From contig NC_090387.1 in assembly GCF_036365525.1 (NCBI RefSeq), positions 76,569,300 to 76,633,299 of the forward strand: a stretch of DNA of 64,000 bases, read 5' to 3'. Source of the DNA: Heterodontus francisci. Taxonomy: Eukaryota. Every line of letters starts with the position of its first letter. Within the stretch, counting starts at the first letter, position 1. A program made the translations under genes and the position numbers. This document shows positions 5,205 through 64,000 of this stretch, piece after piece. The notes beneath the pieces were generated by a model. It searched no databases. It was not told the DNA's origin and saw only the letters and a program-made list of their open reading frames with translations.

Positions 5205-7740
5205 TAAGACAAGACCATAGCTTGTGGAATGTAGATTGGGAGCAGCTGTTTGAAGGTAAATCCACATGTGATATGTGGGAGGCTTTTAAAGAGAGGTTGA
5301 TTAGCGTGCAGGAGAGACATGTTCCTGTGAAAATGAAGGATAGAAATGGCAAGATTAGGGAACCATGGATGACAGGTGAAATTGTGAGACTAGCTAAGAG
5401 GAAAAAGGAAGCATGCATAAGGTCTAGGCGGCTGAAGAAAGACGAAGCTTTGAAAGAATATCGGGATTGTAGGCGCAATCTGAAACGAGGAATTAAGAGG
5501 GCTAAAAGGGGTCATGAAATATCTTTAGCAAACAGGGTTAAGGAAAATCCCAAAGCCTTTTATTCATATGCCGCTATGGGCGGCACAGTGGTGCAGTGGT
5601 TAGCACCGCAGCCTCACAGCTCCAGGGACCCGGGTTCGATTCCGGGTACTGCCTGTGTGGAGTTTGCAAGTTCTCCCTGTGTCTGCGTGGGTTTTCTCCG
5701 GGTGCTCCGGTTTCCTCCCACAAGCCAAAAGACTTTCAGGTTGATGGGTAAATTGGCCATTATAAATTGTCACTAGTATAGGTAGGTGGTAGGGAAATAT
5801 AGAGACAGGTGGGGATGTTTGGTAGGAATATGGGATTAGTGCAGGATTAGTATAAATGGGTGGTTGATGTTCGGCACAGACTCGGTGGGCCGAAGGGCCT
5901 GTTTCAGTGCTGTATCTCTAATCTAATCATATATAAGGAGCAAGAGGGTAACTAGAGAAAGGATTGGCCCACTCAAGGACAAAGGAGGAAAGTTATGCGT
6001 GGAGTCAGAGAAAATGGGTGAGATTCTAAACGAGTACTTTGCATCGGTATTCACCGAGGAGAGGGACATGACGGATGTTGAGGTTAGGGACAGATGTTTG
6101 GTTACTCTAGGTCAAGTCGGCATAAGGAGTGAGGAAGTGTTGGGTATTCTAAAAGGCATTAAGGTGGACAAGTCCCCAGGTCCGGATGGGATCTGTCCCA
6201 GGTTAGTGTGGGAAGCGAGAGAGGAAATAGCTGGGGCCTTAACAGATATCTTTGCAACATCCTTAAACACGGGTGAGGTCCCGGAGGACTGGAGAATTGC
6301 TAATGTTGTCCCCTTGTTTAAGAAGGGTAGCAGGGATAATCCAGGTAATTATAGACCGGTGAGCCTGACGTCAGTGGTAGGGAAGCTGCTGGAGAAGATA
6401 CTGAGGGATAGGATCTATTCCCATTTGGAAGAAAATGGGCTTATCAGTGATAGGCAACATGGTTTTGTGCAGGGAAGGTCATGTCTTACCAACTTAATAG
6501 AATTCTTTGAGGAAGTGACAAAGTTGATTGATGAGGGAAGGGCTGTAGCTGTCATATACATGGACTTCAGTAAGGCGTTTGATAAGGTTACCCATGGTAG
6601 GCTGATGGAGAAAGTGAAGTCGCATGGGGTCCAAGGTGTACTAGCTAGATGGATAAAGAACTGGCTGGGCAACAGGAGACAGAGAGTAGCGGTGGAAGGG
6701 AGTTTCTCAAAATGGAGACGTGTAACCAGTGGTGTTCCACAGGGATCCATGCTGGGACCACTGTTGATTGTGATATACATAAATGATTTGGAGGAAAGTA
6801 TAGGTGGTCTGATTAGCAAGTTTGCAGACGACACTAAGATTGGTGGAGTAGCAGATAGTGAAGGGGACTGTCAGAGAATACAGCAGAATATAGATAGATT
6901 GCAGAGTTGGGCAGAGAAATGGCAGATGGAGTTCAATCAGGGCAAATGCGAGGTGATGCATTTTGGAAGATCCAATTCAAGAGTGAACTATACAGTAAAT
7001 GGAAAAGTCCTGGGGAAAATTGATGTACAGAGAGATTTGGGTGTTCAGGTCCATTGTTCCCTGAAGGTGGCAATGCAGGTCAATAGAGTGGTCAAGAAGG
7101 CATACGGCATGCTTTCCTTCATTGGACGGGTTATTGAGTACAAGAGTTGGCAGGTCATGTTACAGTTGTATAGGACTTTGGTTCGGCCACATTTGGAATA
7201 CTGCGTGCAGTTCTGGTCGCCACATTACCAAAAGGATGTGGATGCTTTGGAGAGGGTGCAGAGGAGGTTCACCAGGATGTTGCCTGGTATGGAGGGCGCT
7301 AGCTATGAAGAGAGGTTGAGTAGATTAGGATTATTTTCATTAGAAAGATGGAGGTTGAGGGGGGACCTGATTGAGGTGTACAAAATCATGAGAGGTATAG
7401 ACAGGGTGGATAGCAAGAAGCTTTTTCCCAGAGTGGGGGATTCAATTACTAGGGGACACGAGTTCAAAGTGAAAGGGGAAAAGTTTAGGGGGGATATGCG
7501 TGGAAAGTTCTTTACGCAGAGGGTGGTGGGTGCTTGGAACGCATTGCCAGCGGAGGTGATAGACGCGGGCACGATAGCGTCTTTTAAGATGTATCTAGAC
7601 AGATACATGAATGGGCAGGAAGTAAAGAGATACAGACCCTTAGAAAATAGGCGACAGGTTTAGATAGAGGATCTGGATCGGCGTAGGCTTGGAGGGCCGA
7701 AGGGCCTGTTCCTGTGCTGTAATTTTCTTTTGTTCTTTTG
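5205..7740 (+). mobile_element. Young 5'-truncated CR1 (HER1-type) LINE, ORF2 reverse transcriptase
   Basis: KSPGPDGI, NYRPVSLTSVVGK, QHGF, YMDFSKAFDKV, GVPQGSMLGP, KFADD; 3' tail GGGCCGAAGGGCCTGTTCCTGTGCTGTA..(TTCTTTG)n. Confidence 0.96.
5570..5926 (+). mobile_element. HE1-type V-SINE nested in CR1 ORF2
   Basis: Full tRNA head GGGCGGCACAGTGG...GGTTCGATTCC, (TCTAA)n tail, TSD TCATAT 5564-5569/5927-5932. Confidence 0.93.
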
Positions 7741-19874: not shown

Positions 19875-21385
19875 CTTCTTCTTTGGCCTTCTTGTCTCGA
19901 GAGACAATGGGTAAGTGCCTGGAGGTGGTCAGTGGTTTGTGAAGCAGTGCCTGGAATGGCTACAAAGGCCAATTCTAGAGTGACAGACTTTTCCACAGGT
20001 GCTGCAGATATAATTGGTTGTCGGGGCTGTTACACAGTTGGCTCTGTCCTTGCGCTTCTGTCTTTTTTCCTGCCAACAGCAAAGTCTGTTCGACTCGCCA
20101 CTCTTTAGCCCCGCCTTTATGGCTGTCCGCCAGCTCTGGCGATCACTGGCAACTGACTCCCACGACTTGTGGTCAATGTCACAGGACTTCATGTCACGTT
20201 TGCAGACGTCTTTAAAGCAGAGACATGGATGGCCGGTGGGTCTGATACCAGTGACGAGCTCACTGTACAATGTGTCCTTGGGGATCCTGCCATCTTCCAT
20301 GCGGCTCACATGGCCAAGCCATCTCGAGCGCCGCTAGCTCAGTAGGGTGTATATACTGGGGATGTTGGCCGCCTCGAGGACTTCTGCTTTGGGGCTTTGG
20401 TCCTGCCACCTGATGCCAAGGATTCTCCGGAGGCAGCGAAGATAGAATGAATTGAGACGTCGCTTTTGGCTGACATATGTTGTTCAGGCCTCGCTGCCGT
20501 AGAGCAAGGTACTGAGAACGCAGGCTTGATACACTTGGACTTTTGTTTTCCGTGTCGGTGCGCCATTTTCCCACACTCTCTTGGCCAGTCTGGACATAGC
20601 AGTGGAAGCCTTTCCCATGCGCTTGTTGATTTCTGCATCGAGAGACAGGTTATTGGTGATAGTTGAGCCTAGGTAGATGAACTCTTGAACCACTTCCAGA
20701 GTGTTGTCGCCAATATTAATGGATGGAGCATTTCTGACGTCCTATCCCATGACGTTCATTTTGTTAAGGCTGATGGTTAGGCCAAATTCGTTGCCGGCAG
20801 CCACAATCCTGTCTGAGTCTTTGCAGACACTGTTCTGTGTGGGATGTTAATGCAGCATCGTCAGCAAAGAGGAGTTCCCTGATGAGGACTTTCTGTACTT
20901 TAGTCTTCGCTCTTAGACGGGCAAGGTTGAACAACCTGCCATCTGATCTGGTGTAGAGGAAAATTCCTTCTTCTGAAGACTTGAATGCACGTGAGAGCAG
21001 CAGGGAGAAGAAGATCCCAAACAGTGTAGGTGCGAGAACACAGCCCTGTTTCACGCCACTCAGGATAGGAAAGGGGTCTGATGAGGCACCGCTATGCTGA
21101 ATTGTGCCTTTCATATTGTCATGGAATGAGGTGATGATACTTAGTAGCTTTGGTGGACATCTGATCTTTGTTAGTAGTGTGAAGAGACCACGTCTGCTGA
21201 CGAGGTCAAAGGCTTTTGTGAAATCTATGAAAGCAACGTAGAGGGGCATCTGTTGTTCGCGGCATTTCTCCTGTAGCTCATGAATGGAGAACAGCATGTC
21301 AATGGTGGATCTCTTTGCTCAAAAGCCACACTGTGCCTCAGGGTAGACATGCTCAGCCAACCTCTGGAGCCTGTTTAAAACGACT
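19875..21385 (-). mobile_element. RTE-clade LINE, 5' truncated
   Basis: LQEKCREQQMPLYVAFIDFTKAFDLVSR, GVKQGCVLAPTLF, LLFADD, RMEDGRIPKD, C-terminal CxxC..H..H-like CSTCGKVCHSRIGLCSH; (GAA)n tail. Confidence 0.93.
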
Positions 21386-48200: not shown

Positions 48201-48850
48201 AACTCCCCAACGACCAAAGCTAAGGCACTGATACAGTTAACATGATGACGGTGAGGAATAAATCTGATTAATAGCTGTCCTTGAAAAGTTCCTGTTGCGG
48301 GGCGCACTTCTCCTTAAATGAGCAAATCAGATGCAGACCTCCTTTGGCTTGGGATGGTGGGGAGGAAGCTCGCGTGTCCTACGTTGGCTGAAGGCTAAGG
48401 GGTGGGGGTGGGTTTGAGGCCGCAGAGAAAGTCCGAGTTAGAGTATTAAGGAAGTGCAAAGGGTGAAGGGGCCTCTTGTGCGTTTTAGCTTTTGCAGAGC
48501 TGTGAATGCTACAGCCAACATCTGTGCATGTGTGAGGTGCGGAGACCGCAGAAAACAGGCCTGCAGAGAGGAAACTGATGGACAACTCACCCCCAGCACC
48601 CTCCTATCTCCCGGCACTCACCACCTTCCCTCCTCCTCTCGCATGGCGTGACCTTTGATTTCTGCTTCAGATAAAAAAATAATCGCTTGAGTAGATCTCG
48701 AGAAACAAAAACAGCGCGATTTATACTTCTAGCGTACATGATGTGCAGATCTTACCTACCCATCACCCAGTATTGAAACCGCAAGATTGCAAGTGTGATA
48801 TCGAACAATTGCACATCACATTATCTCAAAAAAAGTTTACTCTCCTCTTC

Positions 48851-48868
48851 CCGCGCCCCGCCCAATCC
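48851..48868 (+). promoter_or_regulatory. Overlapping GC box and CCAAT upstream of IgSF leader
   Basis: CCGCGCCCCGCCCAATCC about 50 nt before ATG 48915, in a CpG-rich region. Confidence 0.45.
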
Positions 48869-48914
48869 AGCCCAGGGTCTGGTGCCCAGTCGGTCCTTAG
48901 TTCCAAGTGTCAGT

Positions 48915-48969
48915 ATGTCTGGAAGAACCCAACTTCACTCCATACTTATTCTGGTCGTTTCTTGCACAG
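48915..48969 (+). CDS. IgSF VJ-C1-TM gene, leader exon
   Basis: agtATGt; MSGRTQLHSILILVVSCT signal-peptide-like; donor G|GTACGT, phase 1, matching the V exon. Confidence 0.8.
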
Positions 48970-49280
48970 GTACGTGTCTTCAGTTTAACACCTCCTACAT
49001 AGTGAAAGCAGTAAATGAAGCTCACAAAAATATTCACAACGTATGTATATTAAATTATATAACTTTATAGCTGAACTTCTTTCATATTGTTCTTTGGAGA
49101 GTAACAATTCTTTTGATCGCCATATGTTTAGGAGAGGGGATATTTCTAACTAAGGAATAAAATTTACTCAGCAGTATGCGACTGAAGGGAATGCTATTGT
49201 CCCGTTTTCTACTAATTATATCCGCTCACCCTCCTCCTCCCATGAATAAATGTTTGGTGTTTTCTTTATTTTGTTACTAG

Positions 49281-49583
49281 TTGCTGATGAAGTGCTTCAG
49301 TTCCTCGATATAAGGAATGCAATCGCAGGGCAGACCGTGACTTTTCACTGTTCGTTCCCCCTGTTCAAAGATAAAAATAAAATCGTAGTGCACTGGTGGA
49401 AAGACGGCGAACGGGAATTCTTAAACTCGAGACCAGATCCCAGGAGACGTTTCCGTGTTGAGAGCAAAGCGAGCGCTATGTTGAGCCTTCTGAACGTGCG
49501 TGTCGGAGACTCTGGAGTCTATTATTGCAGAGTGCAAGGGGAATTTACTGGAAATGGGACCGGCAAAATGCTTAATGTAAGCG
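49281..49583 (+). CDS. IgSF gene, V-set exon with germline-joined J-like segment
   Basis: ttactag acceptor; GQTVTFHC...VHWWKDG...LSLLNVRVGDSGVYYCRV...GNGTGKMLNVS: B-strand Cys, C-strand Trp, DxGxYYC, GxGT; donor G|GTGAGT, phase 1. Confidence 0.93.
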
Positions 49584-50258
49584 GTGAGTGATCATTCTCA
49601 GCGACTTAGAAATCACAAGTTACATCTGTTTCTAATACTAATCGGGGCCAGTGAGATAGGACAGGGATGGAGTGAGAAAAAGGCTGGGACGGATGAAGCG
49701 AATTGTCGTTAATTTATTAGTTACGACTCTCCCATTATGGTACATTTAAAGAATAACCAGAGCACAGCAGATTATTGTGGCCGGGGAGCTAACAGAACTT
49801 AGGTGCAGCTGTACCAAACATCAGTCACTGGGCACGGGTGATCGGCGCTTTTGTTGCTCAATCAAGTCTGGTGAAGGTTGACGAAAAAGCCCAATGCTGA
49901 GCATTACACAATTGGTCTCACACCTTGACATTCATCTATTGTTCTGGGGGTTACCGCAGGCTCCTGCTTTAGCTGCTATTTCGAAATCATTTACTGCGTA
50001 AAATAATTTTTAAAAGTATGTCGTAATCTTCCCAGATAGTTACATTTCACATCGACATCTTCTAACAAGCGTTTCCCATTATCCATAACCTTCCGGCCAG
50101 TGAAATCGCTAACTTCCCCTCTCGTCTTGGACTTTTTATGTTAGAATGAAATCCGCTAGTTTGAACCTTTTTATTATTGCCCCTCTTAAAAACAGCTCGT
50201 CGGGGTTTTCCGAATGGAAATCGCGGGCTGGGCGGCACAGAAAGGGAAACCTCGGCCA

Positions 50259-50449
50259 TAATAAAAGCAAAATACTGCAGATGCTGGAAATCTGAAATAA
50301 AAACAAGAAATGCTGGAACCACTCAGCAAATCTGACAGCATCTGTGGAAAGTGAAGCAGAGTTAACGTTCCGAAGAAGGGTCACTGACCCGAAACTTTCC
50401 ACAGATGCTGCCAGACCTGCTGAGTGGTTCCAGCATTTCTTGTTTTTAT
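50259..50449. mobile_element. Penelope pLTR-derived fold-back insertion
   Basis: 55-bp inverted arms 50297-50351 and 50395-50449; flanking direct repeat CTCGGCCA at 50251-50258 and 50450-50457. Confidence 0.85.
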
Positions 50450-52374
50450 CTCGGCCAAGTCTTTACCGGAATGGCCGCGGACCGAAATTTTTTCAACTCT
50501 CACTGGGCAACATCGAATCGTTTTCTGCAAGGAAAACTGCAAATTTTTCTGCAGATTGGTTGCTTAAAAAAATCGGTCCGCTTTGATTTAGTTACAATAA
50601 CATACAGTGTAAGGCGTTCTGCGGGAGGAAAAAAATCTCGCACTGAGAGTGGAAAGTAGTAATAATTTCCAGGCTCATGTCCAGGATACATTGGGGACAC
50701 TGTTAGCTGGACTAAACTGAAGAATGACAGGTATGAATAACATGGATACTCCTGTCCACGGGAGAGTGAAGAATGATTCATTTTCAAGGATGCCGGTGTA
50801 GGATTTGTTTCTCCCGGTCTGCGTAGACATGCCTGGAGATTTTTTCTGCTTGGGTACCTCGAGCGAAATGGTTGACAATGATGTTTTTACCACTTCGCTC
50901 CAGCTAGCAGATTCTCCCAAACTCAGGAGCAGATTCTCCCAAACTCCAGTCGGGGATCAGAAGCATTCTAAAGGGATAGGGGGTTATAACTGAATTATGA
51001 CATTCCGCCGAGTCCAGTTATTGCATGATTCTTGCCATCAGACGGTGCTGTAAATGAAAGATGAAGACTGTTACCGCGACCTATAATTGACACTGTTTAT
51101 ACTGAATGTATCTGCAGCTCTTTCTGTAATTTGTTTAGAAAAAGTTCTGACCAAACGTAAAACAGGCGGCGGATCCAACATCGTCCATTTTACTCAATGG
51201 CACATTTCTAGCCTGACAGGAATGATAGTGAATCGACAGCCCATGTTACATCTCGCCAACCTTTTATTTCCATTGATATCACCCGTTTTACCCTGTTGCA
51301 CAAAGTCAAAATTACTCCCAGTGGTCCTTAACTATTGTTGCAAACTAAAACAAACTGCAACTCATCGGCTGTCCAAACCCCTGTATTAACGGGTCATTTT
51401 GTTATATATATCGGAAGCTCGCGGGCCACGCATAAAGAATCACATTACCAAACACCGAAGTTCCAGGATTAAACATGAGAGAAATGCTTCCGTAAACGAA
51501 GTTACAAAAACTGTTTTAAGGTGTGCTGCTGCGGCTTTACTCCGGGAGTAACCTTCAAGAGGACGAGTCTCCCAATGGGGAAAGGTTTCAAGGGCTCGTC
51601 CATTGAATCTGGCTCCCCGAGTCTAACATTCCTCTGGTCTAAGTGAAACACATATTGGATTAGTCCAAAATCTAGAAAACAAAATCTCCGACCCCTGAAA
51701 AGTAATAGGAAGTAGTATTCAAATCGGAACATTTAGTATTCAAATGTTAAAACCTATAACCAGTCAACTTCGTGACAAATGCATTTTCCTCTCAAATTGT
51801 TTAACGGCCAATTCAAACCCAACTATTCACTTACATTAGTGTTTCAAACTTTGACGTGCTCCAGTGAAACAGCTCGAATGAGTAGATGTGCCAACTAATT
51901 GGGTAAGAAAATTCAAGGTCTAATTTTGGGACATTGGAACTTTAATTGTCGTTTGAATCAGAACCACATCAGGGACCAAGCCTGGGATTTAATTTGTGAT
52001 ACTGTGTCCTGTAATTTATGATCTTCACTAACAGCCATCATTTCTCACTTCCATTATTAGTTGGGATGTTGGTGTAGTTTGAATATAGTTTCACTGGTCT
52101 GATGTTAAACAGTACCCCCACCCCCACCCCGCTGGAAATGCAAAGAAGTTAACGATTTTTGTCCTGTCGTTTTCGTCAAAAGCCGTAACGTTCAGAATAT
52201 CTGGAGATGCAGAAAATTGACAGACCCAACAGTCAACCCAACAGCCTGTCTTTAGCCCATAGCACCAAGCTATTGTTTAATTAAAGGACGTTTCATATTG
52301 CTGAAAGTAAACTATTTGCAACATAAATTTACACAGATATTGTAACGGCCACCTAGTCGGTGTTAACATAAGAT

Positions 52375-55070
52375 AAGAGCATAAGAAATAAGAGTTGGAG
52401 TAGACCATTTGGCCCTTCGAGCCAGCTCTGTCACTTAAAAAGATTGTCGCTGATCTTCTACCCCAATTCCACTTTCCTGTATTAGCCCATTTTCCCTTCA
52501 TTCTCTTTGTTGCTGAAAATACACAGCCCTCTAGGGTACAGAATTCCAAAGATTCACAACCCTTTGAGTGAAGAAAATTCTCCTCATCTAAATCCTAAAT
52601 GGCCGACCCCTTATTCTGAGACTGTGACCCTGTGTTCCAGATTCCCCAGCCAGGGGAACCTTTTTCTGCCCTGTCAAGCCCCTTAAAAATGTATGTGTTT
52701 CAATGAGATTACCTCTCATTCTTCTAAATTGTAGAGAATATAGGATTTGCCTATTCAATCTCTCCCCATTGGACAATCCCCTCATCCCTTTGTGAGCCTT
52801 TGTTGCACTTCTCTAGGGCAAGTATCTCCTTCTTTGTGTAAGGAGACCAAAACTGCACAAAGTATTCCAAGTGTTACCTCACCAATGCCCTGTATAATTA
52901 TAGTAAGACTTCTTACTCTTATACTCCAATCCCTTTGTAACAAAAGCTAACATGCCATTTGACTTCCTAATTACTTGATGTACCTGCATATTAACTTTCT
53001 GTGATTCGTGAACAAGAACACCTAGGTTCCTCTGAATGCAAACATTTCCCAGTTTCTCGACATTCAAAAAAGTTTTGCTTTTTTAAAATTTTTCTATCAA
53101 AATGGATATCTTTACACTTCACTACATTGTATTCCATCTGCCACATTCTTGTCCACTCATCCAACTTGTCTATACCTCTCTGTAGCTTCTTTGCATTCTC
53201 CTAACTGCTTACTTTCCCACCTAACTTTGTATCATCAGAAAGCTTGGATACGTTATACTCAGTCCCCTCATCTAAGGCACTAATATATATTGTAAATAGC
53301 TGAGGCCTAAGTACTGATCTTTGCAGAACCCCACCAGTTACACTTTGCCAACTTGAAATTGTCCTGTTTATTCCTGCACTCTGTTTTCTGTCCATTAACC
53401 AATCTTCAATGCATGCTACTACCCCCAAATTCTATGAGTCCTAAATTTGTGTAATAAACTCTTGTGTGGCACCTAGTCAAATGATTTTTGAAAATCCAAA
53501 TACACATCACCTCTATCCATCTCCTTCGTTACTTCCTCAAAAAACCCTTACTGATTTGTTAAACAGAATTTCCCTTTCATAATTCTGTGTTGACTCTGCT
53601 TAATCATGTAATGATTTTCTAAGTGCCCTGTTACCACATCCCTGATAATAGATTCTAGCATTTTACCTATGACTGATGTTAGATTAACTGGCCCGTAGTT
53701 CCCTATTTTTTCCCTTTTTCCTTTCTTAAATAGCAGGATGCTACATTCCTGTCCCTGGAAACTGTTCTAGAATCTAAGGAATTCTGGAAGATCAAAATCA
53801 GTGCATCAACTATCTCTACAGCTACCTCTTTTAAAACCCTAGGATGCAGATTGTCAGGTCCGGGGATTTTTCACCTCTTAGTCCCATTAATTTCTCCAGT
53901 ACAATTTCTCTACGAATACTGATTTCTTTTAAGTTCCTCATTTTTGCTAAACCCTTGGTTCCCCATTATTTCTCGAATGTTTTTTGTTTCATCTATCGTG
54001 AAGACAAATACAAAGTATCTTTTTAATGTCTCTGCGATTTCCTTATTTTCCATTATATCACTTGTCTCTGCCTCGAATGGGCCACATTTACTTTCACTAA
54101 TCTCTATTTACATATCTATAGAGACATTTACAATCAGTTTTTATGTCTTTTGTTAGTGTGCGCTCATTCTCTTTTCTGTTTCCCTATCAAGTTCTTGGTC
54201 CTCCTTTGCTGAATTTTAATGTTGTTCCAATCTTCAGGCTTACTACTCGTTTTGGCAACATTACAAGACTCTTCCTTGATCTAATACTATTTTTAATTCC
54301 TCTTGTTATCCATGGTTGGACTACTTTTTGTATGGGGATTTTGGAATTTATATTTGTTGCAAATCATGTATTAATTCTTTAAATACTAACCATTGCATGT
54401 CTGCTGTCATATTTTTAATGTAGTTTTGCAATCTACCTTAGCCAACTTGCGCTCATACCTATGTACCTACATTAAGATTTAAGACCCTAGTTTCAGACTT
54501 GACTAAATCACTTTTAAACTCAATAGAAAATTCTGTCATATTATGACCACTATTTCCCAAAGTCCCATTTACTACAAGGTTATTAATTAACTCTTTCTCA
54601 TTGCACAATACAAGATCCAAAGTAGCCTATTCCCTAGTTGGTTCCTTGACATACTGATTTAGAAAACTATTTCTATACATTCCATAAATTTGCTCTCCAC
54701 ACTATTACTGCAAATTTGGTTTGACCAGTCTATAGGAAGGTTAAATTTTGAGATGATTGCTGTATTATCTTTATTACATGTGTCTCTAAGTTCATGATTT
54801 ATACTCTGCCCGACAATACAACTAATGTTAGGGCTCCTTTAAACAACTCCTACCAATGTTTTCTGCCCTTGCTGTTTCTTAGCTCCAGCCAAACCGATTC
54901 TACTTCTTGATTTTCTGAGCTAAGATCCTTTCTCTCTACTGTCTTTTTTCCCATCCTTTATTTAAGGGGCTACACCTCCTTTTCCACTTTATCAACCCCT
55001 TCTAAAAGTTAAGTATCTTGAATATTTAGTTCCTAACATTGGTCTCTTTGCAAGTACATCTCTGTAATGG
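52375..55070 (-). mobile_element. Old CR1 LINE fragment
   Basis: Minus ORF remnants WQSVTGGVLQRSVLRPQLF, KLSDDTKLGG, RRMRGNLIE; CR1 3' UTR. Confidence 0.85.
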
Positions 55071-55239
55071 CTATTAGATCAAATCTTTTAATTTCAATCT
55101 GTTTTTCTGCCCTTTATCCTAAATCTCTCACATTCAACCATATCTCTATATCCATATCTCTTTTTCCCTTTGGTTCTAGACTAATTTATTATAATTTCAT
55201 AAATTTGCTTTCATTGTAGATGGTGATGTTCTTAACAGC

Positions 55240-55570
55240 CATGGTTCAGTGCCAGCATTCTTGCGTGAGAGTTCAAGCAGCACTCCAGGGACTTCAGCAC
55301 ACAATCTAGGCTAAATCTTCAGTACAATAGTGATGGAGTGTTAAACTAAGTGCATGACTGCCCACTTGGGTGGAAGTAAATGTTCTCATGGCACTATTTA
55401 AAGAGCAGTATTGTTGTCCCAGTGTCCTGGATGACATTTATCCTTCAACCAATACCATCGAAAAATTACCTCATTACTGCTTGTGGGACTTACTGTGGAC
55501 AACTAGATTGTTGTGAATTTTGTTGGCAGCAAAGTGTTTTGTAACATTGTGAAAGATGCTAAGAAAATGA
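55240..55570 (+). mobile_element. Deu-domain SINE, diverged
   Basis: ATGGCACTATTTAAAGAGCAG...CCAGTGTCCTGG..ACATTTATCCTTCAACCAA. Confidence 0.7.
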
Positions 55571-56239
55571 AAGTTCAGCTTTGACAGTGATGTGCATTTC
55601 ATCTGAGAAGGGGAAACATTCAGATGAAAATATTTTAGCAGTTTAGCTCCTGACAAAATATTACATCACAGCCTTCTTTTTGTGATTCTGTATTTTTTTA
55701 AAAATGTGCTGATCAAGGTGCTGGAGAATGCAAATCTTCCCATTTAGGCACCCAGTGTTAGTATCAGGCACTTCTAGATCAGGTAAGGCCACTTATTCCC
55801 AGTCTTGTGAAGGTGCTTAAATAAAAATGAATTCAATTTTTTTTGTTTAGTTATAGAACCACAGAACTATAGAAAAATTATAACATAGAAGGAGGCCATT
55901 CAGCCCATCGTGTCTGTGCCGGCCAAATAAACTAGCCGCCCAATCTAATCCCACCTTCCAGCACCTGGTTGGTAGCCTTGCAAGTCACAGCTTTGCACAT
56001 CCCCAAGTCACAAGTGATACAAAGCAGAAAGATAAAATTAAGATGAAAAGGTAAAAGCTCAGAAAAACAGTCTGTAGTTGCATTGTAAGTATTAAAATGG
56101 GGGAATGAAAATTACTCTAGTCTTTGTGTTGCACATGCCAATATAGTAATAAATATTTCCTCTGATTGGTAATTCTAGGAAAATTGGAAAGAGTACATTT
56201 GCAATTATACTAGAAACTCTGACCAAAGAAAATCTTTCC

Positions 56240-56545
56240 TCTCATGGATGAATCTAGAATTAGTTTCAGAATAAGGGATTGCCCATTTAAGACGGAGAGG
56301 AGGAGGAATTTCTTCTCAGAGGGTTGTGAATCTTTGGAATTTTGTACTCCAGAGAGCTGTGGAGGCTGAGTCATTGAATATATTCAAGACTGAGAGACAG
56401 ATATTTGAACTATAGGGGAGTTGAGTGTTATGGGGAACAAGCTGAAAAGTGGAGTTGAGGCCAAGATCCGATCAGCCATGATCTTATTGAATGGTAGAAC
56501 AGGCTTGAGGTGCTGTATGGCCTACTCTTGCTCCTATTTCTTATG
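56240..56545 (+). mobile_element. Old CR1 3' end
   Basis: GAGGAGGAATTTCTTCTCAGAGGGTTGTGAATCTTTGGAATT...CAGCCATGATCTTATTGAATGG. Confidence 0.75.
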
Positions 56546-57754
56546 TTCAGCCATGTTGTACTTTGGGATATTGTGTACATGCTTAATGCATTTATATGAA
56601 ATAGACTCACACGAATGCACTTCCAGTGTTGCTGCACAGAGCAAACAGCATTCTTCTGCCTGCATGATCTCACAACTACTAAATCTATCAGTGGTTGAAG
56701 CAGATAGCATTGACACTTTTAAAGGAAGGGTTGATGCATAAATGAAGATGGGAATAGAAAGATATGGGGCAGGATGGGATGTGGTATTGTGAAGAATAAG
56801 CTAGCTTGGCTGAATGACCTGTTTCTGTACTGTAGATTCTAGTCCTGGGTCTTCTATTGCAGCAGCATGCACCAAATGTTGATATTGGCAATTATTATTC
56901 TTGTTGAAACAGTATTCTGAATAAAATGTCACAGTTAATTTAAAGTTTTTCTTGATCCCAATTAGAAATAACAATTATAGAATGGTTACAGCACAGGAGG
57001 AGGCTATTCAGTCCTTCGTGTCCATGCCGGCTCTCTGCAAGAGTGACTCAGCTTGTACCACAGCCCTGCCCTTACCCCGTAGCCCTGCAAAAAAATTTTG
57101 TTGAAAATTTCTACCAATTTAAACAAGCTAAATGCCACATTTTGTACACTAGTAGATTACAGCATTCACCATTATCATTCAGCTGTCCCTCTCTTATCTG
57201 TTCAACATCAATAGTGCTTAAACATCCAATGTGTTTGCCTGAACAATGAGTTTCAGGAAACATTACAACGAAGCCTAAATATATCCTGAATGGATATTCT
57301 CAGACGCTGCTGGGTGGCAATTTGAAGCATGGGCTAATTTTAATTTTCCCTTCCCAGCTCTGGGATGCTCAGCCAAATTGTAACTATTCAAGATAACACT
57401 GGCTAATCCCATATAGACCAGAAATTGAATCAATAAACAATACATTCACCCAATGTGTTCTTGGATAATCTACATTTTTGTATGCCATGTTACTACATGA
57501 CAATGTATTATGAAGACACCAAGTTTCTGTTGCTTTATTGCTTACGTGAGAATGTTCTGGGCATCCAGGCTCTGAAAATTGATACAACTTAATTCACAAT
57601 CACACCAGGAAGCAGTTTCTATGAACTGTGGAGCAGTTAAATATTCATAGATAAAGCATGACTACAATTTCGTTAAATGATGCCAAGAGGAATATATCAA
57701 TATTTTGTATTCAATATAGAAATCAGGAAATTTATTTTTTTTGTTTTTCTATAG

Positions 57755-58051
57755 CTTCTCCACATCCTCTGAAGATTTTACCAAAGTTTTTTGCAAATGG
57801 CTCTCTAACATGTTTATGTAAAACATCTGGGTTCTACCCTGCTGATTACACCATTGCTTGGCAGAAAGATGGTCAAAAGATTGTGGCTGGAGTAACGACA
57901 TTCAGAGAGAAGAATGCTGATGGACTATTTGAAGTTTCCAGTTATTTGCACGAGACACGGCCTGTTCAGATTGGGACTATTTATATCTGTGAGGTATCTC
58001 ACTCTACCCTCAAGAATCCAACATGGGTTAATTATACTGTCAGTAGTACAG
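57755..58051 (+). CDS. IgSF gene, C1-set exon
   Basis: ttctatag acceptor; CKTSGFYPADYTIAWQKDG, NADGLFEVSSYL, YICEVSHSTL (YxCxVxH C1 signature); donor G|GTAAGC, phase 1/1. Confidence 0.94.
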
Positions 58052-58671
58052 GTAAGCAAAAGACCTATTTAGCTGCAAAATTGTTGTATATCGTGGTTTC
58101 AGTGCATTTGGTAGGACAAGTTTTTGCATTGTAATAATGCCAAAAAAGGCGGAGAGTGCAATGCTGGTGATTTTGCAGAATGTGAGTTCAATGGAGGTGT
58201 TGAGACTGATGTACCAGCTGCAGCTGCTGAGCTCAGCAGTAGGATTTAACACTACTTCTAAAGCTTACTTTTACTCGATTTTTTTCCCCCTTCTTCTCTC
58301 TCTTCCTTTTCTGGGTGCACTGTGTCTTGCTGTTCTTCATATGTGATCAGGATGTGGAGACCACCACAAGCAGTCTACTTTTGTTCTCATCCTAAACACA
58401 CCCATGTGCACGCTCACACAGTCATTCCAGTAAGTATCACTGGAAATCAATCAGGAATTTATTTTACCCTCCTTGTAGCACATCAACAACTGATCTCTCT
58501 GGCTAACCTAGCACAGGCCAGGATTTGAACTTGAAACCTTTTGACTGATTTTTGACTGAACAACTGTAGTGAAAAGAGAGAAGATAAAAAAAGGGCAAAA
58601 ACAAAATAACACAAACAGAACTGACAATGCATTGTGATTTACAGTCAACAGTGGGTAGATGAACCACAGTC

Positions 58672-59080
58672 TATTTTATTCATTTACTGGATGTGGGCAT
58701 CACTAGCAATACTTATATCCATCCTAAATTGCCCTTGAAAGGATGGTGATGAGCCGCATGCTTGAATACATCTGAATGGTTTGCTAGGCGATAATAAGAC
58801 AGTTAAGAGTCAGCCACATTGCTGTGGGTCTTGAATCACATAAATATCAGACCAGGGAAGTATGGCAGATTTCCTTTCCTAAAGGAAATTAGTGAACCAG
58901 ATAGGTTTTTATGATAATCAGGTAGTTGCTTGGTTACCACTACTGATGCTAGCTTTTTGTTCCAGATTAAATTAACTAATTGAATTTAAATTCCCCATCT
59001 GCCATAGTGGTATTTGAACTCATGTCTCCAGTTTATTAGTCCAGGCCTATGGCTTACTAGATCAGTAACATAACCGCTAT
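58672..59080 (-). mobile_element. Older SINE-like derivative of the tRNA-headed LINE
   Basis: Diverged reverse-complement match to 23177-23559 with a longer 3' tail portion. Confidence 0.78.
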
Positions 59081-59589
59081 CCTGTCATCACTTATTGCCT
59101 CAGCCTGCCTGCTTGAGTAATTGAATTACAGATCTCAGATGATGAGTGCTGAGAGCCACAAGACAGAAATAACATGGCAATCTGTAGATAGTAATTATGA
59201 AAGATTATATTTAGTGTGAGAGTAACTGGGAAACACAGTTGTCTCACTATTCCATCAATTGTTTTCAAGCCATAAGAAAGTTACTTGTTAGTTGGTCAGT
59301 GAATGTTGTTCCTTTATGAGCTTAAGTGTGTACGCAGAGCTCTGTGTTCCACACTCTACATTGACCCTGAGCAAGCGGTGAAAACACGCTGACAAGTGGT
59401 TTCACTATTTGATATGCAGCAATTGTTGCAGGACAAAGGGGTCTTAAAGCAGATAATATTCCCAAAGTTAGAATGAATTCCCATTGGCAGTCGCCTCATG
59501 TTTTGTGTACTTATATGTTTTTTGCCCTAATGTCACCCCTTCCCCCACCACCTCTTTTCAAGACAATGACATTTGCCTCACCCCCAGTA

Positions 59590-59945
59590 CTTCATCCACA
59601 TGTGAGTTTAGACAGTGTCTGTCACCAATTTTTAACCATGGGAGCTATGCAACTCAACATGTACTGTCAGGTGTTCATAAGAGATTCCTTTGCACTTTTC
59701 AGAGAAGAGCAGGGTAGGTCTCCCTGTGTCCTGGTCAACATTTATCCATCACCTAACATTATAAAGAGATGAACTGGTCATTTATTTCATTTGTGTTTGT
59801 GGGATCTTGCTGTGCACAAATTGCCTGCCATGTTTCCAATATTATTACAGTGACTACAATTTCTAAAAAGTAATTAATTGGCTGTAAAACACTTTGAGAT
59901 GTCCCAAGGTTGTGACAGATGCTTGTATAAATGCAAGTTCTTTCA
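59590..59945 (+). mobile_element. Deu-domain SINE
   Basis: GAAGAGCAGGG..TCTCCCTGTGTCCTGGTCAACATTTATCC...GGGATCTTGCTGTGCACAAATTG...ATAAATGCAAGTTCTTTC. Confidence 0.8.
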
Positions 59946-60589
59946 TTAAACAGGACAGACAGAAAAAAAAGGATGCCAATAATCCAAATTAGCCATGTGA
60001 TTTCAATTAAATGTTAATTCAACGTTTTATGACTGTAATATGTGAAAATCAAGATATTGTGTTGTTGGACTAAAACACACTGTAGTAAGAGTTCAAGGAA
60101 CAAAAGCATTTTTAAAGATTTACCGTATTTAGCATTTCTCGTGTAATTGTTGTGTTCTTTACCAGCGTATTTACAATTTCTTTAGAAATTGCAACAACAG
60201 TTTCCACAAATACACTTATAAAGTTGTTGCTACGTTATAGCAAATGGAAAATTTCCCTCTCTCAATGTATCGATGCTTCAATTTACAATGTTTTATTACT
60301 GTTTTATCTTGGAAATATTTTTTAAATGTATGTGTTTGGGGGAGTTTAATTTCAAGCTCAACCAAGGTGAGTGGGTAAGATGCAGAGTAAAACATCCTTA
60401 ACTCCATGCTTAGAAGAGCACCATCAACTATACGTACGCCAATTTTCCATTCCTATTAGCCAACCTTGTGGATTGTTTGACTGATATAACCTATAAACTA
60501 CTTATTGCTAATCTGGACTGAATTTTGAACAGTTTTGACCCACGTCATCCAGGAACTGGATGAGATTCTCAAAGTCATTACACCTAAGG

Positions 60590-60906
60590 TAAAGCCTGGC
60601 TCGAGTATAAAATGAAAACCCGACTGGGCCTGACCCAACCACAGCCAGCTCGAACCCGACCGGGCCTGAGTCCTTCAATTTTTTTTCATGCCTGACCCAA
60701 CCCAAAAATATCAAACATGTTATTAATACAGAAAAATAAAACACATCAAAACGTAGATTAAAAAGGTATCAATACAAAACAAAACCTGACCACAGCCAAC
60801 CTGAACCTGACCCGAGCCGAGCCCGAATGCTGGACACTGAATATGGACCCGAACCCGACACACATAGTTGGGCTTGGTCAGGTTCGGGTTGGGTAGCCAG
60901 GTTTTA
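60590..60906. mobile_element. hAT-type MITE (317 bp)
   Basis: TIRs TAAAGCCTGGCT / AGCCAGGTTTTA, 8-bp TSD ACCTAAGG (60582-60589, 60907-60914), repeated subterminal ACCCGA/TGACCC motifs. Confidence 0.9.
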
Positions 60907-61170
60907 ACCTAAGGGTCACGAGGTGTAATTTTATGCATTTGGTAGTTCTGGCACAAACTTTTATGGCCCAGGCACAGTAATTGAAATATTGGGTGTGAAG
61001 GGTGGCATACTGTTTTTGTGCAGGGAGCTTAAATTCATCATATATATCTAGAGCCATCAGAATGAGTTGGTGTCTTAGAAAGTGAAGTAAGAACCTGCTA
61101 ACCTACTGTACCATCGTTTTCCTTCTGAAAGTGAATTACTTTATTTTTCTGATTTGTATGTGCCTTGCAG

Positions 61171-61281
61171 GCGATGGTTTCAGTGCCTCCTTTCCTTGGT
61201 GGATCTATCTCTGTGGAGCAATATCTCTACTACTTCTGATTATTTTGCTGGTACTTTGTTGTAAATTCTGTAAATGTAAAG
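61171..61281 (+). CDS. IgSF gene, transmembrane exon
   Basis: ccttgcag acceptor; GDGFSASFPWWIYLCGAISLLLLIILLVLCCKFCKCK; donor G|GTAAGG, phase 1/1. Confidence 0.88.
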
Positions 61282-64000
61282 GTAAGGGAGCCATCTCATT
61301 TCATTCATGGTTGGATTTCTAAACTTAATCATCATCAATTGTACCAACACAAAAATGACAAGCTGAAAGGATATTGTGAACTAATCATATTAATCAGAAA
61401 TAATGACTTTAGGATCAAAAAATATGACTCCTTTTTTTAGATGTTTTGTGCAATTTATTTTTGAGCTCATCAAGGTGAAGGATGTTAGTGTTACAATTGG
61501 AACACTTCCATTCTAGTCACTAAGAACTTCCAGATTATGTATAGCACATTAAAAGACCGGGTAAAGTTTCTCCTATTCTCCCCAGAAATTTGGTACAATT
61601 CAGAAAATCCCCTACTGTGCCAGTGTGACATTTTCCCAGTTGTCACGTCCTGGTATGAGATTGTCAGTTAGTTATTATTTAGGCACAGTTTGTGCTGTGG
61701 TACCTCACAACTATGAGGAACTGAAATGAAAGTGCCCGAACCCATTATTTTTAAAATCCTTACAATCAACTGACAGAGAACACTTTCATCCCACCAGTCT
61801 AGGTTTAATTCGAACCCAGGTTCCAGAGGTCAAAGGCCACTGTCTAACCCCTGCATCACTCAGTCACATTTTGTGTCTAGTATAAATTATTTTCTTCTAT
61901 ATTCCATGCTGCATTCAACGATGAGATTAGTTACCCACTCCCAGGCATTTGCAAATACCAGTCAAGGCAGATCTTGAGAATGGCACAAATTGAATAACAT
62001 TATTTTCCCAGCTCCTTAGGGTTAAACCACTTGCCCTCCTCTGTCTGCCTTCTGATTTGAAGGCATATCTGAGATTCAGAACTCTGTGTGGGGAACCTTG
62101 GATCCTGGCTCATGTTTCTTAATATAATGCGGCCAACTTTCATCTTCCTTATGGCCCTAAAAACTGGAGCAAAGGAGAGCTAACTTGGGTGAAAATCAAC
62201 TCTGCACAAGTTTTTCTTCAGGTTTGGAGTGTGTGAAAGAAGTTCCATTTGAAACAGGTATGAGCTTAATTAGCATTTTAAAATGGGGGTGTGAAAGTGC
62301 CCTATTTAATTTTCTTCTTTGATGGTGGACTTGCTGAGCACTGAGTCCAACCCACATCCAAGAAAACCAAGCACACGTCATTCTGTGGGTGAACCTTTCA
62401 GACATATAAAGGGCATGAAATGTTGTTAGACCATTTCTGGGTCATTTGGGGAAATACCTTTTTTTTTCTCTGTTGGGCTCATGAAAGTGCAAGTACCATT
62501 CTGCTACTTCTCTTAATTTAGTTTTTATCCTGCACACTTTTTTTTGAATCAATGAGTTTTCCAATGGGAATCTTCCAGGCAAGCATGTTTGGCAGAAAAT
62601 AAATACCTCTTGAGGGTTGTTGAGCAGGTCAGGCTGCCCAACAGGTGCCTAAATCCATCCCACCAACACCCATATCTGTAGGGAGAGGTGAATTTACTTT
62701 ACTTTGGTAGATATAATGCTGATGGAGGATCCAGTTCCCAAAGAAAACTGTGCCACAGACGATGTCACATCTATATGCTGACAACTGTTACGCTGGATGA
62801 TATGTCATACTTTATGTAGTACTACACGAAAGAATGACTGGCAGTATGATCAAGACTTAGCATTGGCTGCGCCTGCCAAATTGCCAGCAACATTGTTGCA
62901 GGCCATGGTTCACATGATTGGCAAAGACAATGGGAGCCAGTCTTCTTAAGGTCTGGACCTAAAGAGAGGTGGATGCAGAGCTGTGACATCATCCACAAAG
63001 GCAAGCATCTTAAAACTGCCACACACACTGATAATGACAATTAGTTTTGGCTTGAAACTTGGCTGAACCTCTTTGCAGGTCTGCTGCAATGCTGGCTTAT
63101 GGAAATATGATACTATGGAGTGGTACATGAACATCTCATGCAGCACTAAGATAAATTACACAGCTTTCATACCATTGGTTGGGTGTTAGTTTTGCCACCA
63201 TTTGCATGCAGACTCATGCATACCCCTAGGGTTCCAGTTCCCTTAATTTTGCAGAATATTTCTTAATCCCCTCTCCCTTCAGCCTTAGCAAAGATTGTTA
63301 AGGGCCTGAAATGGCTTTTGAGTTATCCAAAGGCTTTCTGAATTTTCTGAACTTTCTGACTCTGTCCTTAATTGTTCTCATCCATTTAAATCTGATTTAC
63401 ACACAAGTTTCCTCTCCCACCATTACTGTCCTTTCTAGACCTGTTTGACTCTGTATCTTTCCCTATAAAGAATTAGGCAAACAAGTTTACAACAGAGCAT
63501 TCAGTGCAATAAAATCTCAGTTCCTTTCAACTTTTTTAAAGACACATTTTTATGTTGCTTGCAAATAAACCAACAACTCACCTTATCTTTTGTTCAATCT
63601 TTAGTCCTTCATCTACTGAATTATTTGTCTTTGTTAACTTTCATTATCTCAACTGAAACTCCTATATTTCCACCAGTAACTGTTGCCTACAAGAAGTTGA
63701 CTTGAAATTTACATTCATCAATTCTTTATCTTTATCAAAACTTAAATTCTGTTATATTAAGAGAGGCTCTCCTATGACTAATCTCATAGTCATATCTCTT
63801 AGGACATCCTTCTCTCCCTTCTTGCCTCCAACTCCTCTCTCTCCTTTGCACCTTTTCTCACCTGTTTTACTTTCAAAGATGCTGCAATGGTTATTTATCT
63901 CTTGAATTTTCCTCTCTTGCCTAAGTTCCAAATAAGTCATCATACACATTGTACTTCCTTCTTGCAACCTCACTTTGTAAAATGAAGACTCATAGCACTG

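Follow-up and report, generated by a model that had tools for sequence, protein, structure and literature searches.

A horn shark gene encoding a non-rearranging VJ-C1 membrane protein and its conserved chondrichthyan orthogroup without signalling motifs

Four exons located between positions 48915 and 61281 of a 64,000-nucleotide stretch of the horn shark genome (Heterodontus francisci, contig NC_090387.1; this entire stretch is termed the window) raise the question of what kind of immunoglobulin (Ig) superfamily protein they encode, and whether it is a receptor, a ligand, or a relic of an early antigen receptor. An original prediction, made from the sequence alone, had read them as a non-rearranging antigen-receptor-like gene with the order leader, VJ domain (a variable domain that already includes a joining-type strand), C1-set domain, and transmembrane (TM) segment, in which an NKp30-like V domain is joined to a C1 domain resembling B7-H6, the ligand of NKp30. 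We found that the stretch contains the first four exons of a real, expressed, and spliced horn shark gene that is annotated in RefSeq as XP_067905825.1 and XP_067905826.1. Sequence comparison assigns this gene to a single-copy, slowly evolving orthogroup kept in sharks, rays, and chimaera, of which it is the horn shark copy. We consider it likely that the product is a TM glycoprotein of this motif-free VJ-C1 orthogroup, encoded on the same chromosome as a large and fast-diverging family of paired receptors, and that it acts as a ligand, counter-receptor, or co-receptor.

All four exons are in phase 1, are bordered by canonical splice sites, and add up to 766 nt (55 + 303 + 297 + 111). As read from the sequence, the exon 1 donor is CAG/GTACGT; exon 2 is delimited by an acceptor ending in CTAG/ (AG at 49279-80) and the donor GCG/GTGAGT, exon 3 by ATAG/ (AG at 57753-54) and ACAG/GTAAGC, and exon 4 by GCAG/ (AG at 61169-70) and AAAG/GTAAGG. 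The in-frame translations correspond to a hydrophobic leader, a V domain ending in YYCRVQGEFTGNGTGKMLNVS, a C1 domain, and a TM segment. The exons were searched separately, and database proteins served as the joined protein sequence. We searched 1.84 billion representative proteins with the V exon using HMMER and then retrieved the names of matches, which led to two H. francisci proteins in RefSeq, namely, XP_067905825.1 (P0161; 321 amino acids [aa]; "CD276 antigen homolog isoform X1") and XP_067905826.1 (P0165; 284 aa; "tapasin-like isoform X2"), the latter being P0161 minus exon 4. The translations of all four exons were 100% identical to these proteins and were found in the predicted order, with exon 4 present only in P0161. 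The in-frame joining of four phase-1 exons into a type I membrane protein was thus predicted correctly, with exact exon positions, but the gene model was not complete. There is no stop codon up to the end of exon 4, which is therefore not the last exon, and P0161 continues after it with a 66-aa cytoplasmic tail, for which tblastn found no match in the 64-kb window. Since the tail is absent from the window and the exon 4 donor is used (see below), the gene runs past base 64000 and is incomplete in the window. Exon 4 is symmetric (phase 1-1), and its skipping consequently preserves the reading frame. The features are compiled in Table 1.

Table 1. Features of the horn shark gene and of the remainder of the window
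Feature	Position	Strand	Basis or remark
Exon 1: ATG and the larger part of the signal peptide, MSGRTQLHSILILVVSCT plus 1 nt	48915..48969	+	Residues 1-18 of P0161/P0165
Intron 1: 311-nt leader intron, layout as in Ig and T-cell receptor (TCR) V genes	48970..49280	+	Exons 1 and 2 contiguous in P0161
Exon 2: end of leader and VJ-type Ig domain	49281..49583	+	100% identical to residues 20-119 of P0161
Intron 2: 8171 nt, repeat-rich	49584..57754	+	V and C1 contiguous in P0161
Exon 3: C1-set Ig domain (..SLTCLCKTSGFYP..WQKDG..GLFEVSSYL..YICEVSHSTL..)	57755..58051	+	Pfam, AlphaFold2 (AF2), RNA contigs
Intron 3: 3119 nt, several transcribed repeat copies	58052..61170	+	Spliced out in transcript contigs
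Exon 4: short stalk, uncharged TM helix WWIYLCGAISLLLLIILLVLCC, juxtamembrane Cys/Lys cluster KFCKCK	61171..61281	+	
Intron 4, start only	61282..64000	+	Donor used; tail exon(s) past the window end
Inverted repeat, intron 2	50294-50452		59-nt arms, 93% complementary, 41 nt apart
Repeat copies, intron 3	58700-59100, 59700-59900, 60500-60900		High contig depth
LINE-type (long interspersed nuclear element) reverse transcriptase open reading frame (ORF)	5999-7663	+	Pfam RVT_1, 9.6e-36
LINE-type reverse transcriptase ORF	20764-21297	-	Pfam RVT_1, 5.6e-14

Transcript contigs from four transcriptome-like runs (X1, X2, X5, and X8), which stem from three studies and two organisms, were mapped onto positions 57700-63699. 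In each of the four runs, one contig contained the splice joint 58051/61171 (aligned as 58048 to 61168, a shift of +3), at which 3119 nt with GT..AG borders are skipped; the C1-TM junction was hence found in RNA exactly as predicted, in contigs from all three studies. The contigs cover exon 3 at 57754-58048 and exon 4 at 61168-61281 and then leave the stretch, and unique intron sequence in the mapped region, including 61300-63699, had no contig depth in any of the four runs. The longest contig (2112 nt) extends 752 nt ahead of exon 3 and 951 nt past position 61281; the latter segment indicates that the exon 4 donor is used and that the next exon lies beyond 63699. Gene models in five species, ranging from chimaera to sharks (Heterodontus, Hemiscyllium, Chiloscyllium, Heptranchias, and Callorhinchus), include isoforms that skip the TM exon. 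Such an isoform is predicted to fuse V-C1 in frame to the basic tail, and, if real, its polybasic tail would form the C terminus of a secreted protein. The contigs of the second organism, organism B (X5 and X8), differ from the window at 57785, 57921, 58003, and 61249-61250; the changes are K>T, one silent exchange, and S>A in the C1 domain and CTG>CCA (L>P) in the TM segment. These contigs probably derive from a different species or population of Heterodontus.

Does the gene rearrange? The V exon contains, within a single exon, Cys23, the HWW Trp, the DSGVYYC motif, and a J-like GNGTGKMLNV strand (GNGTG..L.V). A scan of both strands of positions 48800-62000 for heptamer/nonamer pairs resembling recombination signal sequences (RSS) retrieved 11 weak sites, as compared with 7.1 in shuffled sequences, and none of them was located at the end of the V exon. 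With V and J sharing one exon and RSS-like sites at the chance level, the gene is confirmed to be non-rearranging, and the germline J-like strand without a subsequent RSS, as stated in the original prediction, was borne out by both the translation and the scan. The gene therefore does not possess the separate V and J segments with RSS-flanked DNA of rearranging Ig light-chain and TCR genes. It has in common with them a split leader, a VJ domain, and a C1-set domain in one chain. A split leader is a typical feature of antigen-receptor genes (PMC12227049).

The V exon matched the Pfam families V-set (3.8e-9) and I-set (1.8e-7), and its AF2 model, folded with a family alignment, had a predicted local distance difference test (pLDDT) value of 95.9. 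The two Cys residues are spaced 59 residues apart and the model has no C'' strand, both of which agree with a short domain of the V/I type. In the VIA structure comparison, the matches were tied at Z values of 12 to 13.3 and included the V domains of IgNAR, VH/VL, and TCR V-delta as well as CD79b and I-set domains of NCAM and titin. NKp30 (6yjp_A) occupied rank 31 of 50, with a Z value of 12.2 and 24% identity over 99 of 100 residues, and was not distinguished from the other matches. It was not among the best 50 Foldseek matches of the model, nor among the best 60 rows of either the single-sequence or the profile search of solved structures. These sequence searches were dominated by multi-Ig proteins and antibodies; within the best 60 rows listed, which contained neither NKp30 nor B7-H6, the best single-domain V matches were V-NAR, TCR, and CD79b. 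V domains of the B7 family were not distinguished either, with B7-H4 at rank 48 in VIA and PD-L1 at rank 10 in Foldseek. The models thus suggest that the likeness of the V domain to NKp30, which the original prediction had proposed, is not specific.

These data bear on the first alternative, namely, that the gene is a member of the published "shark NCR3 (NKp30) family," in other words, an NKp30 homologue that has kept the ancestral C1 domain and serves as a natural killer (NK)- or T-cell receptor for a B7H6-like ligand. We regard this as unlikely. The alternative would account for the VJ-type V domain with CRV..GNGT, including the N-G-T sequon in the G strand, for the nearly complete alignment with NKp30 mentioned above, and for the fact that a V-only isoform from Pristis was automatically named "natural cytotoxicity triggering receptor 3-like" by NCBI. 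However, it is difficult to reconcile with the position of NKp30 among the structure and profile matches, the presence of a C1 domain, and a TM segment that lacks Arg.

The C1 exon matched the Pfam C1-set family (1.1e-12), carries the signature ..CKTSGFYP..W..DG..Y.C.V.H..L, and gave an AF2 model with a pLDDT of 93.1, also folded with a family alignment. Its top VIA matches were all C1-set domains tied at Z values of 12 to 13.4, namely, the Ig light-chain constant domain (CL), the alpha2 and beta2 domains of major histocompatibility complex (MHC) class II, IgNAR C1-C3, UrIg2 C1, TCR C, Fc domains, and SIRP-gamma D2. Among the matches listed, B7-H6 (4zso_E) ranked first by structure-based identity (34% over 90 residues, Z value of 12.0), and the top Foldseek match was MHC II beta2. 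The second domain is thus confidently modelled as a true C1-set fold, in agreement with the Pfam assignment, and this fold is generic rather than specific to B7-H6. The proposed B7-H6-like character stands as far as the best identity is concerned, but the Z values are tied, and MHC II beta2, CL, IgNAR C, and UrIg2 C1 perform equally or better by Z value or Foldseek E value. According to the models, the resemblance of the C1 domain to B7-H6 appears real but modest, so that of the proposed combination of an NKp30-type V and a B7-H6-type C1 domain only the second part is retained, and in a weaker form.

That C1 identity is also the structural argument for a second alternative, in which the protein is a shark B7-family ligand, related to B7-H6/NCR3LG1 or CD276, that is read by an NKp30-like receptor. 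The V-C-TM architecture encoded by phase-1 exons and the motif-free tail, a combination known from many B7 ligands, agree with this idea, as do the automatic names "NCR3LG1-like" and "CD276 antigen homolog" and the nearest protein-atlas clusters (ICOSLG, CD80, BTN, CD276, and PD-L1), the latter being based on scores and not on alignments. We nevertheless consider it rather improbable, since the J-like GxG bulge strand and the split leader are typical of antigen-receptor-type V domains, the best V matches were IgNAR V, VH, and NCAM with B7 V domains merely tied in fold score, and the closest paralogues are clearly receptors that possess ITIM tails (immunoreceptor tyrosine-based inhibitory motif) or a charged TM segment.

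How widely is the gene distributed, and what are its relatives? Using phmmer, we retrieved dozens of chondrichthyan V-C1-TM proteins that share 35 to 58% identity. Among the named matches, the family members were from cartilaginous fishes only, and no bony-vertebrate protein was found among the matches for which names were looked up. Orthologues were identified in at least 14 chondrichthyans, with one full-length orthologue per species searched; the full-length sequences share 39 to 72% identity and come from Carcharodon, Cetorhinus, Mustelus, two Scyliorhinus species, Stegostoma, Hemiscyllium, two Chiloscyllium species, Pristiophorus, Heptranchias, Hemitrygon, Hypanus, Pristis, Narcine, and Callorhinchus. 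The automatic names assigned to them are inconsistent and include CD276, tapasin-like, Ig lambda-like, SIRP-alpha-like, and NCR3LG1-like; the last of these, given to several V-C1 orthologues, and the NCR3-like name of the V-only Pristis isoform recall the original prediction. A maximum-likelihood tree was built from the V plus C1 parts of 43 proteins, in which the gene of the window was represented by residues 20-119 plus 121-218 of P0161. This sequence, 13 orthologues, and one Heptranchias paralogue were separated from 28 paralogues with a support of 97/93*. The branching order within the clade mirrors the chondrichthyan phylogeny, running from galeomorph sharks through squalomorphs to rays, with chimaera outside, and its end branches measure 0.02 to 0.25, as compared with 0.2 to 1.0 for the paralogues.

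The orthologue and paralogues are located on the same contig in seven chondrichthyans (horn shark, Heptranchias, Callorhinchus, Hemitrygon, Carcharodon, Scyliorhinus, and Chiloscyllium), and the elephant shark accession numbers of these genes follow one another almost directly. The paralogues contain one of two modules, either long tails with ITIM or ITSM (immunoreceptor tyrosine-based switch motif) sequences or short tails combined with an Arg or Lys residue in the TM segment, which is the pattern of paired inhibitory and activating receptors. The description of the gene as a candidate uncharacterised elasmobranch immune receptor holds as regards a non-rearranging leader-VJ-C1-TM gene of an elasmobranch, but the gene is not unannotated, given its RefSeq entries, its orthologues in at least 14 chondrichthyans, and its membership of a large VJ-C1 family. 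The Heptranchias perlo paralogue within the clade (P0026, XP_067853539.1) has a TM segment of the same WWIY.C type and a longer tail with two Tyr residues (..VYTAI.. and ..VYATP..). This paralogue may connect the inhibitory family with the orthogroup that lacks such motifs.

The paired modules of the paralogues resemble SIRP alpha and beta, and many family members are automatically named SIRP-alpha-like, raising a third alternative, according to which cartilaginous fishes and bony vertebrates share a non-rearranging VJ-C1 receptor lineage, with this gene corresponding to SIRP or PRARP after loss of the ITIM tail. The match of SIRP-gamma D2 to the C1 domain (Z value of 12.2) and the Tyr-bearing tail of P0026, combined with the same TM type, are in line with this view. 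So is the account of PRARP as an MHC-linked VJ-C1-TM-ITIM protein (Fu et al. 2019, as cited in PMC10751288). Arguments to the contrary are the single C1 domain, where SIRP has two, the identity of only 22% to SIRP-gamma D2, and the restriction of the matches with looked-up names to cartilaginous fishes; we judge this scenario to be improbable.

The TM segment and the cytoplasmic tail set the orthogroup apart from its paralogues. Among 15 orthologues, no charged TM residue was present, and the tails, which contain 0 to 2 Tyr and 2 to 7 Cys residues, lacked ITIM, ITSM, and ITAM (immunoreceptor tyrosine-based activation motif) sequences. These 15 proteins thus have neither of the two modules of the paralogue family. 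The horn shark tail (66 aa) is basic, rich in Cys, and devoid of tyrosine. In an alignment of 12 orthologues, C266-x-R268-C269 and H311 are invariant from chimaera to sharks; H311 is part of a KKH(R/H)K(R/K) stretch, of which KKH.K is nearly invariant, and the WW.Y.C start of the TM segment and a Cys cluster at the inner membrane face are conserved. A CD8-alpha-like "CKC" motif was also considered and was discarded because it is not conserved, the ray sequence being LCYKLCKHK; the Cys motif that does not vary is CxRC, which lies downstream.

The best-conserved regions of the protein are the segment resembling complementarity-determining region 3 (CDR3; RVQGEFT), with a mean pairwise identity of 0.72 and an identity of 0.86 between horn shark and chimaera, and the J-like strand, with values of 0.71 and 0.73, respectively. 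For the same pair of species, the V domain is more conserved (0.46) than the C1 domain (0.37). A near-invariant CDR3/J face and a V domain that exceeds C1 in conservation are the opposite of what is expected for a pathogen-driven receptor and suggest a fixed partner.

A fourth alternative concerns pairing, since the gene could be a relic antigen-receptor chain that forms an Ig/TCR-like dimer through V and C1, either as a homodimer or together with a second chain. This possibility draws on the VJ-C1 layout, the split leader, and the fact that the C1 domain is most similar to pairing-type C domains (CL, MHC II beta2, and UrIg2 C1). A VJ-C1 precursor is moreover the current model of the receptor that preceded RAG (PMC10751288, PMC12227049). 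We consider it very unlikely, as no membrane-proximal Cys for an interchain bond was found in the ectodomain, a prediction of the ectodomain homodimer (residues 20-218, two copies) had a score of 0.01 and lent no support to pairing, and tblastn detected no partner gene in the 64-kb window. In addition, SIRP and B7-H6 possess C1-type domains and do not pair.

Our preferred reading, that of a motif-free TM glycoprotein, can be formulated as follows. (i) The split-leader VJ-C1-TM protein would be displayed at the cell surface as a type I glycoprotein, and the isoform predicted to lack the TM exon would be released as a secreted form. (ii) The near-invariant CDR3-like/J face may bind a conserved, probably host-encoded partner. 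(iii) The Cys cluster at the inner membrane face is of the palmitoylation type, and we infer that it may be palmitoylated. (iv) Lacking a charged TM residue as well as ITIM, ITSM, and ITAM sequences, the protein is expected not to signal in the manner of the paralogues, NKp30, or SIRP and to use neither ITAM adaptors nor ITIM phosphatases; any signal might be transmitted via the invariant CxRC motif and the polybasic tail or through targeting to lipid rafts. (v) The protein would then most likely act as a ligand, counter-receptor, or co-receptor.

Several points weigh against this reading. The V-to-C1 junction was not directly seen in the contigs, as the two exons are 8.2 kb apart and the mapped region comprises 6 kb; it is based on the RefSeq models, the V-C1 form of the proteins of all orthologues, the 752 nt upstream of exon 3, and a cDNA-based record of the elephant shark orthologue (NP_001279892.1/AFK11468.1). 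The TM-skipped isoform was not among the contigs listed for the four runs, and its horn shark form is a gene-model prediction only. The homodimer prediction is no evidence either way, and a tail free of Tyr is not proof of absent signalling. Finally, the orthogroup may already carry a published name, in the work either on the shark NCR3 family or on B7H6 and NKp30, although text searches of the literature retrieved no description of a shark VJ-C1 family with such a tail.

A more far-reaching version, to which we assign a very low probability, is that the chondrichthyan VJ-C1 family was founded by this conserved orthogroup, which would also be a surviving relative of a VJ-C1 ancestor that gave rise to NKp30-type V and B7-H6-type C1 domains. 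It would then recognize a fixed self partner with its CDR3/J face, and its CxRC-plus-polybasic tail would represent an undescribed signalling or kinase-docking module.

A tblastn search with each exon matched only the exons themselves, and thus no paralogues or further Ig exons were detected in the 64 kb. In the 48.9 kb upstream of the gene, ORFs of at least 110 aa were either LINE reverse transcriptase fragments or had no Pfam match, and Rfam gave no match. The inverted repeat in intron 2 looks like a miniature inverted-repeat transposable element or a hairpin element. Over the repeat copies in intron 3, the summed contig depth reached up to ~35,000 in all four runs, with many short contigs at 90 to 95% identity; these copies are members of abundant transcribed repeat families and do not belong to the gene.

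What does the gene add? It was already annotated in RefSeq under inconsistent and misleading automatic names. Together with its orthogroup, it is a well-defined representative, without signalling motifs, of the non-rearranging VJ-C1 receptors of the Ig superfamily. Non-rearranging VJ-C1 genes are favoured models of the antigen receptors that existed before the RAG transposon split the V exon, and to our knowledge few of them have been characterised, namely, UrIg, UrIg2, PRARP, SIRP, and NCR3. The horn shark gene contributes a well-supported and very old example, extending from chimaera to sharks, with a near-invariant predicted binding loop. This loop, together with the single copy, hints at a fixed partner, for which pull-down experiments would be suitable. 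The contrast with the fast-evolving paired paralogues on the same chromosome makes the orthogroup an anchor for dating and rooting the family, and the gene could help to test whether NKp30 and B7-H6 share a VJ-C1 ancestor. The data also illustrate that RefSeq names are unreliable for this family, as a single orthogroup is distributed over CD276, tapasin, Ig lambda, SIRP-alpha, and NCR3LG1.

A comparison with known systems places the gene as follows. NKp30/NCR3 (human structures 3NOI and 6YJP) likewise has a single-exon, non-rearranging VJ domain with CRV...GNGT in the F-G region, and the horn shark exon, which encodes YYCRVQGEFTGNGTGKMLNV, shows the same germline VJ type with a GxGT-type G strand; the human G strand also carries the N-G-T sequon. 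Mammalian NKp30 has a V-only ectodomain and a TM Arg for pairing with CD3-zeta/FcR-gamma. The horn shark protein differs in its additional C1 domain, a TM segment without Arg or any other charge, and a different tail. In nurse shark, Kinlein and colleagues (2021, Immunogenetics 73:333) reportedly distinguished eight divergent subtypes of a "shark NCR3 family." B7-H6/NCR3LG1 (4ZSO, 6YJP) and the gene share the IgV-IgC-TM order with phase-1 exons and, in the C domain, the ASP start, SGFYP, and Y.C.V.H..L; the J-like bulge strand in V and the split leader distinguish the gene from B7-H6. SIRP alpha/beta/gamma resemble it in a J-like V domain that is followed by a C1-set domain and in the inhibitory/activating pairs formed among its paralogues. 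SIRP proteins differ from the gene, which has a single C1 domain, in having a second one and in carrying either an ITIM tail or a charged TM segment.

Among the non-rearranging VJ genes of the shark MHC or its vicinity are NCR3, UrIg (VJ plus three C1 domains), and UrIg2 (PMC10751288, PMC12227049). UrIg and UrIg2 (9DMX; Flajnik et al. 2023, 2025) are elasmobranch genes with a VJ exon and a split leader followed by C1-type domains, and the resemblance is visible in the C1 domain (Z value of 12.8 and 28% identity to UrIg2 C1) and in a phmmer match of 7.9e-20 over the whole UrIg2 chain. However, the C domains number three in UrIg and up to 9-11 in UrIg2, and both are disulfide-linked dimers that are secreted or Ig-heavy-chain-like (PMC12227049). 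The layout of at least three C1-type domains in a disulfide dimer is not that of the horn shark gene, which has one C1 domain, a TM segment, a distinct tail, and an ectodomain without an interchain Cys. PRARP, a VJ-C1-TM-ITIM family of bony vertebrates (Fu et al. 2019), was compared by description only, as cited in PMC10751288; it shares the non-rearranging VJ-C1-TM layout, and its tail has an ITIM, which that of the gene lacks. The closest system is the paired VJ-C1 family of chondrichthyans (e.g., horn shark XP_067905922-25), whose members are automatically named SIRP-alpha-like, tapasin-related-like, NCR3LG1-like, or Ig lambda-like. The gene differs from this family in being single-copy and slowly evolving and in having, in place of an ITIM tail or a charged TM segment, a Cys-rich basic tail with CxRC. 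The exon plan and the leader-VJ-C1-TM order are the same, both lie on the same chromosome in seven species, and the motifs WWK.GE, DSGVYYC, GNGTG, the PL(K)I linker, FYP, GLYE.SS, and VY.C.VSH are common to both. In agreement, the V and C1 domains of the gene group by sequence with the chondrichthyan VJ-C1 family, both in the phmmer searches and in the tree.

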